Assembly: GCA_964247055.1 (NCBI GenBank) | Contig: OZ176052.1 | Span: forward strand, 7,936,001-8,000,000 | Length of the DNA stretch: 64,000 nt | Reading direction: 5' to 3' | Origin: Paragordius varius | Taxonomy: Eukaryota; Animalia; Nematomorpha | Shown here: in pieces, positions 30,301-36,500 of the stretch | Position numbering within the stretch: position 1 is the first letter of the stretch | Layout: each line of letters starts with the position of its first letter | Translations under genes and position numbers: made by a program | The notes under the pieces: generated by a model | Told to the model about the DNA's origin: nothing | What the model saw: only the letters and a program-made list of their open reading frames with translations | Databases searched by the model: none

Positions 30301-30406
30301 AAATTTAAATTAGAAAATAATTGATGAAAATGTAAAGATCTTGTTGGAATTGAAAGGGGAATATAAAATGGCCACTGGTACTGATTGGACTCCAAAACCT
30401 GCATAA
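18392..30406 (+). CDS. EPRS1: Glutamyl-tRNA synthetase half of EPRS: GST-like domain, GluRS core, 3 WHEP repeats; 21 exons, 990 aa ending at an in-frame TAA
   Basis: Exons 18392-18449, 18473-18551, 18574-18673, 18695-18857, 18880-19013, 19037-19090, 19520-19605, 20089-20215, 21603-21795, 22167-22338, 23506-23595, 23670-23810, 24179-24341, 25437-25607, 27409-27606, 27917-28090, 28642-28899, 29141-29233, 29667-29873, 29949-30167, 30314-30406 (2973 nt). Motifs: IDHY...LSLADFFVW (GST-like), [19 protein letters not shown] (HIGH), [49 protein letters not shown]; WHEP consensus QGDLIRxLKxxKAxK...LLxLKxxYKxxTGxDWxP. Confidence 0.93.
20270..21240 (-). mobile_element. Decayed non-LTR retrotransposon fragment (RT domain and 3' region) in a GluRS intron
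   Basis: Minus-strand translations include [13 protein letters not shown]...[17 protein letters not shown] (YADD-region-like) and [16 protein letters not shown]. Confidence 0.7.
22620..23420. mobile_element. Palindromic MITE
   Basis: Inverted arms: ggacactataaaggatgtcc...ggagacaatggttgttc (22682-22750) vs gaacaaccattgtctcc...gacatcctttatagtgtcc (23287-23353). Confidence 0.65.
25773..27099. mobile_element. 21-bp-repeat foldback element interrupted by a nested element
   Basis: Left end tataccattt...caaattcaccc at 25773 and right end gggtgaatatgaattgtaaatggtata at 27099. The nested CACTA-like element occupies 25974-27031. Confidence 0.6.
25974..27031. mobile_element. Non-autonomous CACTA/CMC-like element
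   Basis: TIRs CACTAGACAACAA / TTGTTGTCTAGTG with 3-bp TAA flanks on both sides. A shorter, oppositely oriented relative lies at 45073-45547. Confidence 0.6.
29246..29497. mobile_element. 21-bp-repeat foldback element copy
   Basis: tttacagttcaaatttaccctaaaaataaattg ... gggtgaatttgaattgttcgagggttaatttgaattg...tgtaaatggtata. Confidence 0.6.
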
Positions 30407-31549
30407 AATGACGATGTTATTGCAATTTGAATTTATTTAAATAAATATTGCAACCACTTTTTTATATATAACCTTATTTAAATTATATATTTATTGAATT
30501 CAAATTAGGTTGTTTTCTTTACAGTGTTATAATATAATTTTAATATAAAACATCAGCTATGTTTATCTCCAAATTTTTTTAATTAAACCATTTTCTCCCT
30601 TATTATTTGTAACAGGATAAACTTAGGATAATAAAGGCTTTGTTAGGCTTAGTGCAAAATTGTACAAATGACCTTTAATTGTATATATATAATTTGATGT
30701 AAAAATCGCTTAAAGACTATATATTATATAATTTGATATTGAGATATCATGAAAAATATTTTACATCCATAAATTATTGACAAGATATTGGAAAACTTGA
30801 TTTTAGATGTTCCATGCATTAAATATTAATTTTTATATTATCTTTGACTGGAAAATCGCTTGACCAATACTTTGATTTTTATTGATTTTATACAGCCGCG
30901 TAGCTCATGATAACATTTTATTTAAATTCATATGTTTTGCACCATTTTTAATAAATAATGATTGTAAGCTGCGATACACATCGAGAATCTTTCGCGGTTC
31001 ACACAACCTTGTGTGCACCACCTCCACCCCAAAGGTTTATGAATATGGGGAAGATAAAAGTACTTAACTAAACCAAACACTAAATTTGGAATATGCCTAA
31101 ATTTTAATTACAACACACCAAAACGATTAATGTACATAATTTTCATATAGAAATCAGTTTAGCATTTGTATGATCAATAAAGTAGAATATGCTTTTTGAT
31201 GGTGTTGTCAACTAACACATAGGTAAAGCGGTATTGGCTCACTATATTTTCGTGTTTTATACTTAGGGTTTTTCGTATATTCGAAATAAATTTTAACGTA
31301 TAGGTCAAATTTTTAATCATGGTTTAATCCAAATATTGCTAATGTAATCAAACCGTTTCCATACTGAACCCAACTTGAAGAGCGTTTCGCTGGTATGACA
31401 ACTTTATTTAATGAAAAACCAGAAAATATTTTTTAACAATGATAATAAAAATAATGGATATCATATTAATTTTAAACGTTTTCGTTATTGTTCCACTGAT
31501 GCTTGGGGTAACACAGTTTTGAAAAGTAAAATAAAGTATGTGTGATAGC

Positions 31550-32283: not shown

Positions 32284-33585
32284 GTGATAGCGCTGGTTCA
32301 AACATTCATAGACGCAGTAAAATATTTAAATTCTTTTCCGAGACATAAAAAAAATTTCCATGCCAGAAAATACTTCAAGGGCTACGGTTCGAGTGCGGGA
32401 TAGGGGATAAATGTACCATATATAACCAAGAAAGCTTTCTGCCTTGCCATGATTGACAGCGTTGATTGAAAATTAAGCACTCTCTGGTATTTTATTTCAC
32501 TCAGTGCACATATGAGTCTGACGCGTCTTTCTAATATCCATCCTTTTTTGCATATATTTTAAATATTTTCATTGCACGATATATATTTAATGGCTTTCTT
32601 AAATCTTACAACCTTTAGGATATGCAGGAAAAAATATTTTCCGATAGATAAAATAGTATTCTAATGGCACTTTTTGTTTTGGGCTGTACGAGTAATATAA
32701 AGTCATTACCTCTTTTATTATGACTCTTTGAGATAAGAATAGGAAAAGCTCACATTTTTCTTTATGTGCTAACCTCTTCTTTCCAAAAACAACCACTTTC
32801 AATATTTTAAACTATGTATAAAAAAAGCAAAAAAAATATTTAAACCATTTTTAGATAAGGGCTCCGAAAGTTGCAAACTTTTGGACCATTTAAAATGGGA
32901 GCGACTTTTCTGGTATTCTAAAACGTGTGGAAACAAAAAGACTTTAAGAAAGTTTTTATACCTTTCCATCATAAAAAATATCATCACCCTCGCTTCATCA
33001 AAAATCTGCAATTAAATTTATAAGCTAAATATCCATTTTTTGGAACTTTTATTTATGTCAAAATATAGCATAGATATTTAATATTTTTATCGCGCAATCT
33101 TGACATATTTTAAAGAATACTTGCCCAATTTAGACATGTTCGAAAATTTTATTTTAAGCGCACATTCAATATTTTTTAGTAATATTTTTTGGATTAAACA
33201 TTTGGTTTTCACCGAAAAATGGTGATTTAGAAAATGTCCACGTTTGCCATTTTATGATCTGGAGCAGTGACCAAAGTGGTAATACCTTTATACTCGTAAG
33301 GCTTAAAAGTACCATGATAATTTTAATAATTTTGAGACATTTTTTATCAGAATAAATGATTATATCAGATTTTTTATAACCTTTTTCTGCTCTGCATACT
33401 TTAACAGTATTCATGAATTCCATAAAATCTTTATTTTCTTGTATGACACTTTGTCAGTTTGTAGTTTTGATTAAAACTGAACACTAAATTAATTTTCACA
33501 CAGGTTTTTGTGAATGTAGTTCATAACACATTTTTTATTACGTAACCGCATGGTAATAAAATTTAAAATTTAGGATCAGGATAAC

Positions 33586-36500
33586 ATGTCATCAACCTCT
33601 TCAGATGCAATTGAAATAGATACTTTAAGCGAACAAATTAAAGTTCAAGGGGATAAAATTCGTAAAATTAAATTATCAACTGATGATAATGATAAAATCA
33701 GTTTGGATCAAGAAATTAAATTGTTATTGAGCCTTAAAACTAAATTCAAAGATATGAGTGGAAATGATTGGACTCCGGCTGATGGTAGCGGTATTCGATC
33801 TAAGGTTTATTAATTTATAAATTAAGAAAACTGCATTGAAACAAAAACCGGCCGAAAGTGCTCCCAAACTAGCCTCCACCAATAATCCAAATATCAAAAA
33901 AGTGACTAGGTACATATATAACTTAAAAATCAGATTGGGACTTGAGGTTGCCAAATCTCAAAATTTTTCGGAATGGTATACTCAATGTATCACCAAAAGT
34001 GAAATGATTGAATATTACGATGTTAGTGGGTGTTACATCCTTCGTCCTTGGGCTTATTCTATTTGGGAAGAAATAACTAAATTTTTTGATGCATCAATCA
34101 AAAAATTAGGCGTACAAAATGTCTACTTTCCAATGTTTGTTTCAAAGCAAGCTCTTGAAACGGAAAAGAGTCATATTGCTGATTTTTCTCCTGAAGTAAT
34201 ATATTATTATCTGTTATATAAATGGGAAATTATTTTTTTGTCAATTGAAAGAATGATTTACTATAACATATATGTTTTCTGTAACTATTTGATTGGTTCT
34301 TAAAATGCCACACGTTAATCATTCGTTTTTTTAATTTTCTACCCTGAAGTTTTGGCATAAATACTGTCGCTTTTATTTTTAACTTAAGCCTTTATGAATT
34401 TTAGGACTATATTTTATTTTTTGAGAAATTGATTAAAAGACCTTAAATATATTTTATGAGTTTACATTAATTTATTTTCGTGCAAGGATTATTGGACTTT
34501 TTAATTATTTTTTTGCCTCCCTTTTTTAAATTCTTGTATAACTTTAGAAATTTACAGTCATATTACACGGTGCGCAGCAAAAAATAAAGTTTAATGAATC
34601 ATATATCATTCGATAGCTAAAAGTTTTAGGATAATAAATAAAATGATATATGCGGTAAAATATACGGTATGATTAAGGCGATTGTTTTACAATTTGCATG
34701 CCTTTGCAAATCAAGAGACTATTTCGGTGTCCCTGACCTATGGAATTGCCTTTCTGGGCTTACGGAGTTCCATCCCCGCTTACATATATTACAAATTGGT
34801 TGTTTCTAGCAACTGGTTATAGCGCCAGATAAACCCGCTTTATCATCTGTGTGAATGCAGGTATTGTGGTATTTTATAGGAAAAAATAATGGTAGTTTAT
34901 TTTTTCCACCACACCCCACACAGATGATTTCTTACCATTGCCGTTCCCGTTGGTATTAACCAGGGTGCACCACGCGGTGGTGGGAGTCGGACTTTTTATT
35001 GATTTACAAAGGGCCTTTGATTGTATCCCCAGGAAGTTAATCACATCCACACTACGAGCCAACAATGTAGATGATTGGATAATTAACTCAATAGAAATGA
35101 TGTACTACAAAACAACAAACTGCGTCAGATTAACACTAGGCAACACAACTCTTGTTCCAAACGAATCTGGTTTCATCAAGGCTCCATCCTAAGCTCTCTA
35201 TTTTTCATTTTAATAATGGATTACCTAACAAAAGATATAAAACAAGGCCCACCATAGGAACCTATCTATGCGGACGACATTGTCCTCACCGCAACATCAA
35301 TGGAACCATTAAATCAAAAGTACAACGCATGGAAATCACACTTAGAAAATGGTGGAATGAATATAAATATAAGCAAAACAAAGGATATGAACGACCTAAG
35401 TTTCCATGTGGAGCATGTGATTTAGATGTTAAACTCAATTCAATCCTATGAACATCATGCAATATGTGGGTACACAAAAAGTGCTCGCTTATAAAAGGGA
35501 CATTAATCAACAATGAAAAATTTATATGTGAATCATGCAAAAAATAAAACAATAAATTACTCATCCACTTCCCTAAATTACGTTTATATGGCAGACACCA
35601 AAATCGAATTGGTAAATAATTTCAAATACTTGGGCAGTGTCATACATTGCCTAGGTGGAATAAACCAATCAGTTAATAGACAACAGGCTTGGGTAAAATA
35701 TCATCAACTTAAATTTGTCCTCAAAAATAAACACATATCAGCAAAAAACAAAGGTTTGATTTACAAAGCCGGCATACGTCCCATACTCCTGTATGGTAGC
35801 GAGACGTGGCCGATGACAGATTCAATCGAGAAAAAACTAATGAACTTAGAAAAACGGATACTAAACTTATTCCAACCCAATAAGTCAAATTCAAATTTAC
35901 ATCAACTGTACCAAATCGAACCTTTAAATGTCATGCTCAGAAAAAATAGGCTTAGATATTTTGGACACATCAAACGTGCTCCAGAACAATGGACAAATAA
36001 AATTTTATCCCTACATCCCGAAGGTAACAATCGCAGGGGCAGACCAACAAACTGGGAAAAACAATAAATAATGATTTAAGTGTTGCCAACATTGATGATA
36101 ACGCCTGGCAGGATCGCAAATATTACAGACAGCTTCTATACGGATACAATGGCTAGCCATTACACAAAGACGATACGATGCGGTAAAATAATAGAAAAAA
36201 AGTTATATAAATTTTTCTGTTATTAGCCAAAATTAAAAATTCGAATTTTTTTCGCTTTGGTCAAATAAAATTATATAAATAGATGATAACGCGTCATCTA
36301 AATTTTATTAGTTTGAATGTAGCATAAGGATAATTTTAAACGCAAAATATAATAAAGATTCTTTTTTGAGAGTCCTAGAAAGACTTATAAGAATATAAGC
36401 TAAAAAATCTGACTCTGGCGTCAAATTTGAATTATAAAAATTTGTTAATATGCGGAAAAGTTTTAATTTTTATTAAAACAATCATATATTGACTCTATAT

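Follow-up and report, generated by a model that had tools for sequence, protein, structure and literature searches.

EPRS, read in one frame from GluRS through all of its WHEP repeats into ProRS, is to our knowledge the sole fused pair of tRNA synthetases in animals. In papers of 2014 and 2015 a fission of this gene is described only for Rhabditina nematodes (C. elegans, Haemonchus, Necator and Ancylostoma), with six WHEP repeats on GluRS and one on ProRS in C. elegans; EPRS is still fused in Brugia, Loa, Ascaris, Trichinella and Trichuris (PMC4072531, PMC4394549). A literature search for newer reports of EPRS fission beyond Rhabditina found none. A GluRS product without ProRS is also described in human, where the C-terminally truncated isoform EPRS1(N1) arises by coding-region polyadenylation and the fused protein stays the main product, according to PMC10618286, which cites Yao et al. 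2012. Here we took a closer look at the EPRS locus of the nematomorph Paragordius varius in a stretch of 64,000 nucleotides (nt) (contig OZ176052.1, positions 7,936,001 to 8,000,000, forward strand; G+C 24–33%), which as a whole is called the window below and whose positions are counted from its first letter. The locus is of the animal type and lies on the + strand, with a GluRS gene followed by an adjacent and co-oriented ProRS gene about 3.2 kb apart from it. We consider it likely that an ancestral fused EPRS gene was split in place into two separate, co-oriented genes, independently of the fission in Rhabditina nematodes.

The GluRS and ProRS genes compared with other animals

Gene models were obtained using the EPRS of Pieris napi (XP_047521879) and Struthio camelus (XP_068795977), both taken from a protein search, followed by tblastn and a search for exon junctions. 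After splicing, GluRS as well as ProRS align over their full length to the two proteins and show the same domains in the same order, the identity being 45% for GluRS and 55–58% for ProRS. The parts of the two genes are as follows.

18392..30406, + strand: coding part of the GluRS-(WHEP)3 gene, 21 exons, 990 amino acids, from the spliced model against Pieris and Struthio EPRS
29141..30406, + strand: WHEP repeats 1–3 on four exons (29141–29233, 29667–29873, 29949–30167 and 30314–30406), by Pfam WHEP-TRS
33574..33804, + strand: exon of ProRS encoding DQDN and one whole WHEP repeat (Pfam WHEP-TRS, E = 3e-14) and containing the second ATG (33586)
33586..48069, + strand: coding part of the WHEP-ProRS gene, 12 exons, 608 amino acids from ATG 33586 or 613 amino acids from ATG 33550

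GluRS carries a HIGH-type motif, a KMSKS-type motif and the three WHEP repeats, and its exons give Pfam matches to tRNA-synt_1c and a weak one to tRNA-synt_1c_C2. Single exons of ProRS match HGTP_anticodon and ProRS-C_1, one exon shows tRNA-synt_2b below the cut-off, and the protein ends at 48069 with the canonical C-terminus ...FALFGRSY. Both open reading frames are complete, and together they amount to 1598 amino acids (990 + 608), the size of a normal EPRS (1600–1668 amino acids in Pieris and Struthio), no part being missing or degraded. Several intron positions are common to this locus and the EPRS of other animals. Each of the GluRS WHEP repeats is interrupted by a phase-0 intron after ...K, and the last GluRS exon (30314–30406) is the second half of a WHEP repeat, reading ...GTDWTPKPA and then TAA (Pfam WHEP-TRS, E = 4.9e-9). 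In contrast to the fused animal EPRS the frame is thus closed by a TAA between WHEP3 and the last WHEP. In GluRS exon 23670–23810 we also observed an apparent further GT-AG intron of 69 nt, in frame and free of stops (23700–23768, GTTAAA...CTTAG). Excising it drops a 23-residue 'insertion' that is absent from the GluRS of other animals and restores the usual spacing before KPxIWEYS, and if this is an intron GluRS would have about 967 instead of 990 amino acids.

The arrangement resembles the split EPRS of Rhabditina, in that the WHEP repeats sit at the C-terminus of GluRS (six in C. elegans, three here) and a single one at the N-terminus of ProRS. The frame of GluRS stops past its WHEP repeats, that of ProRS opens with a start of its own behind upstream stops and includes one WHEP, and both enzymes are complete. 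An earlier annotation made from the DNA letters alone, in the following called the original prediction, had already proposed adjacent GluRS and ProRS genes with the WHEP partition published for C. elegans, and the two complete, co-oriented reading frames bear this out. The two cases differ in their lineage and also in their layout, as the genes described here are neighbours on one strand, 3.2 kb apart, whereas those for GluRS and ProRS in C. elegans are unlinked. Since Brugia, Loa, Ascaris, Trichinella and Trichuris have a fused EPRS, the nematode fission is internal to the nematodes and the present one would be independent of it. As the two halves still lie side by side on one strand, the split would have taken place in situ, via the gain of a stop and the gain of a start and not via duplication followed by complementary loss. 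We infer separate transcription of the two genes as well as independence from the nematode event. Gene 1 (18392–30406) would then encode a GluRS whose N-terminus is GST-like and which carries three WHEP repeats and terminates at TAA 30404, the transcript of gene 1 probably being polyadenylated after the AATAAA at 30440. Gene 2, transcribed from a start of its own a short way upstream of 33550, would encode a ProRS with one N-terminal WHEP.

Three loci from other animals (L001, L002 and L004) show a fused-type arrangement, with a GluRS 41–68% identical to the present one where that half is present, and in L004 WHEP exons are found upstream of ProRS. A fused EPRS having a short linker instead of WHEP repeats has been published for some parasites. 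Such a fused EPRS without any WHEP was also seen in L001 (9780–10010, ENA ERZ25072730) and in L002 (Logan SRR29373782), with a short Lys/Pro- or Lys/Glu-rich linker in its place.

The stop codon and the proposed splice path

The original prediction had described a full EPRS broken by one codon, with a latent in-frame splice path leading from a possible phase-0 donor at 30416 to a strong acceptor at 33573. Three features around the break are needed here.

30404..30406, + strand: TAA stop ending GluRS, four residues past WHEP3, by sequence reading
30416..30421, + strand: GTTATT, the proposed donor, 1.7 bits, random level
30440..30445, + strand: AATAAA, 34 nt past the stop, the likely poly(A) signal for GluRS

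Direct reading agrees with the letters given for both sides of the break, namely TAA at 30404–30406 followed by AAT GAC GAT, GTTATT at 30416 and AATAAA at 30440–30445, and ttag followed by GAT CAG GAT AAC ATG at 33570–33588. Splice sites were scored using donor and acceptor weight matrices that were trained on 37 introns from the GluRS and ProRS genes and from ATG101 next to them. The acceptor at 33573 is indeed strong, reaching 8.5 bits and belonging to the top 1.8% of all AGs, which corresponds to about 0.7 such sites per kb. The proposed donor, on the other hand, scores like a random GT, as its 1.7 bits are reached by 48.5% of the GTs in the window and equalled or exceeded by 95% of true donors. 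With a donor of this kind, and with an acceptor that fits better to a micro-intron of 21 nt in ProRS (see below), the latent path from 30416 to 33573 is not sustained. Neither is the EPRS interrupted by one codon only, because without the TAA the frame still closes at TGA 30425, seven codons further on. That the acceptor at 33573 lies in frame and in phase 0 is partly automatic, since the upstream stop closing the frame is the TAG of the same ...TTTAG.

In a wider enumeration all GTs from the last two GluRS exons onwards were combined with all AGs in 33300–33590. Only six of these joins are free of stops, and in each case exon 30314–30406 is skipped or truncated; therefore a fused protein with an intact WHEP3 is impossible, and no single frame running from GluRS through all WHEP repeats into ProRS was found among the joins. 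A short intron that would remove the TAA was rejected as well, as the first AG past the stop is located at 30507–30508 and no open acceptor is in phase with the alternative donor at 30378. We also considered a truncation of the EPRS1(N1) type, which likewise consists of GluRS and a partial WHEP linker without ProRS. Its stop arises on the RNA by polyadenylation, whereas the TAA in P. varius is encoded in the genome where a sense codon would be expected, and this candidate was dismissed.

One objection to a split is that the EPRS is fused in the ordinary way and that the stop at 30404 results from an error in the assembly or from a polymorphic nonsense allele, as a single base change could make TAA from several sense codons. 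The sequence around both ends of the break renders this highly improbable: without the TAA the frame would gain just those seven codons up to the TGA, the sole splice that could rescue the frame needs the random-level donor, and the start region of ProRS has its own ATGs, upstream stops and micro-introns.

The ends of the neighbouring genes resemble each other, as poly(A) signals are predicted past the stops of all three, with AATAAA at +34 nt for GluRS, AATAAA at +78 nt for ProRS and ATTAAA at +91 nt for ATG101. AATAAA occurs at a density of 3.1 per kb per strand and is so common that a single copy 34 nt after the stop is weak evidence alone.

Micro-introns and the start of ProRS

Further evidence for a gene start in front of ProRS comes from the size of the introns in both genes and from the following features.

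18450..19036, + strand: five micro-introns in GluRS (23, 22, 21, 22 and 23 nt), within the first 534 coding bases
33550..33552, + strand: candidate true start codon of ProRS, ATG followed at once by GTAATA, by sequence reading
33553..33573, + strand: candidate micro-intron of 21 nt (GTAATA...TTTAG), donor 5.8 bits, acceptor 8.5 bits, its 3' end being the strong acceptor
33805..33826, + strand: micro-intron of 22 nt in ProRS, required for the frame
33910..33933, + strand: micro-intron of 24 nt in ProRS, located in phase 2 within the Arg codon ahead of LGLE and matching an ordinary EPRS intron of L004 in codon and phase

The GluRS introns measure 23, 22, 21, 22, 23, 429, 483, 1387, 371, 1167, 74, 368, 1095, 1801, 310, 551, 241, 433, 75 and 146 nt, so the first five have 21–23 nt and the remaining fifteen 74–1801 nt. 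The same polarity is found again in ProRS, whose introns in the model starting from ATG 33586 measure 22, 24, 3229, 354, 320, 491, 1394, 275, 6135, 85 and 328 nt, the first two (three with the candidate) having 21–24 nt and the remaining nine 85–6135 nt. With respect to the coding sequence the micro-introns are located 58–534 nt from the start in GluRS and 219 and 302 nt from ATG 33586 in ProRS, where they are confined to the first 320 or so coding bases, and all later introns of both genes have at least 74 nt. ATG101 next door has six introns of 22–28 nt inside 780 bp. In a single fused gene, fifteen ordinary introns and about 3 kb of mRNA would precede the micro-introns of ProRS. Given the five at the GluRS start, the probability that two micro-introns placed randomly among the other 26 fall on the first two after the break is P = 1/325. 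Moreover, L004 has an ordinary intron at the position of the 24-nt intron 33910–33933. An old internal EPRS intron thus has 24 nt today at the place where the new start would be, which points to an established transcription start of ProRS and not to a one-codon accident. Judged from these intron sizes, the 5' micro-introns of ProRS suggest a separate gene start and a split that may be regarded as established. Donors of the GTT type (GTTGTA, GTTAGT, GTTAAC and GTTAGA) are frequent in bona fide introns of GluRS and ProRS and not just in micro-introns, as seen at 29234, 29874, 23811, 40590 and 47356.

These observations bear on the idea of the original prediction that the locus is a fission intermediate with both halves still adjacent. 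Fission and adjacency are retained; the intermediate state one codon away from EPRS is not, as the 5' micro-introns of ProRS argue for an established split. In such a very recent intermediate a long intron of the ancestral EPRS would have left behind the acceptor at 33573 and the GT at 30416, and the adjacency and shared orientation of the halves do show that the split happened in place. The hypothetical join would also have a plausible length, as the stretch between the DW in WHEP3 and the QGD in the ProRS WHEP would measure 33 residues, compared to 27 and 32 for the two real linkers counted alike. Nevertheless we regard this reading as very unlikely: it depends on a random-level donor in a frame that recloses at TGA 30425, the phase of its acceptor follows partly from the TAG, the tiny introns near the ProRS start, including an ancient one that today has 24 nt, suggest that this start is established, and the ProRS WHEP is just 30–41% identical to WHEP1–3, compared with 62% between WHEP2 and WHEP3.

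The strong acceptor at 33573 fits better as the 3' end of a 21-nt micro-intron belonging to ProRS itself than as the relic of a long EPRS intron. The original prediction let ProRS begin with its own ATG at 33586. This ATG is present, with TAG 33571–33573 in frame ahead of it, but the likelier start is the upstream ATG 33550 together with the micro-intron, this ATG being the earliest of its own frame following an upstream TGA. The candidate intron 33553–33573 has the features of the other micro-introns, as it is 21 nt long, of the GT-AG type, with an AT-rich body, and stands directly after an ATG. Its donor (5.8 bits) equals the median of true donors, and both of its sites fall into the range of the 13 established micro-introns in the window (donors 3.7–9.1 bits, acceptors 4.9–9.2 bits). 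In the whole 64-kb window, both strands counted, scores at least as high on both sites are reached by only five GT...AG pairs of 20–29 nt including the candidate. One of the other four is a known micro-intron, and the background thus amounts to some 0.03 per kb per strand, although the thresholds are the candidate's own scores and thus post hoc. With looser thresholds the density of pairs rises to 0.29 per kb, still only about 0.015 per 50-nt target. Removing 33553–33573 would join ATG 33550 to GAT CAG GAT AAC ATG, and the mature ProRS would start with M/DQDNMSS..., the slash marking the junction. DQDN would in this case be ordinary ProRS coding sequence and not the relic of a long EPRS intron. 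Both the use of this intron and the choice of the start codon are inferred.

The same acceptor could also receive a spliced leader, if both genes were co-transcribed like an operon into one pre-mRNA, the two proteins still being separate. Both genes do lie on one strand and the acceptor, a very strong one, is positioned 12 nt upstream of ATG 33586. There is only a slim chance for this, however, as the spacer has 3.2 kb, a literature search gave no report of a spliced leader in this group, and the 21-nt intron accounts for the acceptor without any leader.

Besides the post hoc thresholds several other points weigh against two separate genes. The polarity of intron size is an empirical regularity and not a mechanism, verified on three genes (GluRS, ProRS and ATG101), and the peroxidase gene at 59641 begins without any micro-intron; the rule therefore is that micro-introns are 5'-proximal in those genes that have them. 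The spacer does not exceed the length of real introns in the GluRS and ProRS genes (3229 and 6135 nt). Protein searches with ProRS core, WHEP and GluRS core exons did not find an orthologous locus of a close relative. With the first ProRS core exon a protein search gave nothing above 86% identity over part of the exon, the best overall match having 81% (P0001) and none coming from the same species, and a search for homologous proteins likewise gave no close relative; in the latter kind of search the ProRS WHEP exon had zero candidates and the last GluRS core exon one match with 44%. Finally, phase 0 is shared by the acceptor at 33573 (8.5 bits) and a strong donor at 30168 (8.8 bits), and joining them leaves the frame open, so a read-through transcript could give a fused mRNA.

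This last point is the basis for a dual output of the locus, in which exon 30314–30406 would be an alternative terminal exon and read-through transcripts would be spliced from 30167 to 33574 (or 33580), leading to a fused EPRS with 2.5 + 1 WHEPs, possibly besides a ProRS from its own promoter. Introns of 3.2 and 6.1 kb are present in the same gene models, and a human EPRS1 variant cut within the WHEP linker by polyadenylation is functional, again as stated in PMC10618286 citing Yao et al. 2012. On the other side, WHEP3 would lose its second helix in the join of 30167 to 33574, a good donor for this acceptor lies 21 nt upstream of it, and ProRS bears the micro-intron signature of a gene start. 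Taken together we judge dual output to be unlikely, and we are similarly doubtful that a minor fused EPRS isoform is made by skipping the last GluRS exon via 30167 to 33574 beside separate GluRS-3xWHEP and WHEP-ProRS. If dual output were true, the locus would represent an extant intermediate state of a tRNA synthetase, between fused and split.

Spacer, repeats and implications of the probable split

Between the two genes, which we take as separate in the following, a single feature has to be listed.

30407..33549, no strand assigned: intergenic spacer of about 3.1 kb, in which no recognisable WHEP relic (best E = 0.2), Rfam family, tRNA or repeat common to the rest of the locus was found

Repeats and open frames were observed inside the introns. 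Intron 3 of ProRS (34196–37424, 3229 nt) contains long open frames at 34896–36064 that look like the remnant of a retroelement, with no Pfam match for the two pieces tested, and they are flanked by inverted repeats at 34578–34660 and 37216–37298. Nested inverted repeats with arms of up to 119 nt and 85–92% complementarity surround the open frames 43123–43555 in intron 9 of ProRS (6135 nt; repeats at 41228–44932), and this set is probably a foldback or DNA-transposon insertion. A tandem unit of 21 nt, TTCAAATTCACCCTCGAACAA, forms head-to-head arrays together with its complement in a ProRS intron (39868–40303) and occurs again in a GluRS intron (29397–29478) and at 9741–10259. The TTCAAATTCACCCTCGAACAA arrays share a flank of about 94 nt (29296–29389 and 40016–40109, 82%), which looks like a dispersed element bearing a mini-satellite. 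Convergent to the 3' end of ProRS and about 2.2 kb off, an intronless open frame of 624 codons on the - strand (50247–52118) resembles a seven-transmembrane receptor.

If the split is true, P. varius would represent a second, independent split of EPRS besides that in Rhabditina. The cut is located at the same place as in Rhabditina, before the last WHEP, which suggests a tolerated breakpoint, and the split predicts that ProRS has departed from the multi-synthetase complex here, as in C. elegans. Furthermore, the ancient EPRS intron that now has 24 nt at the new start would be a natural experiment on the rule that tiny introns are found near starts, and the locus suggests that intron size tracks the distance from the transcription start.

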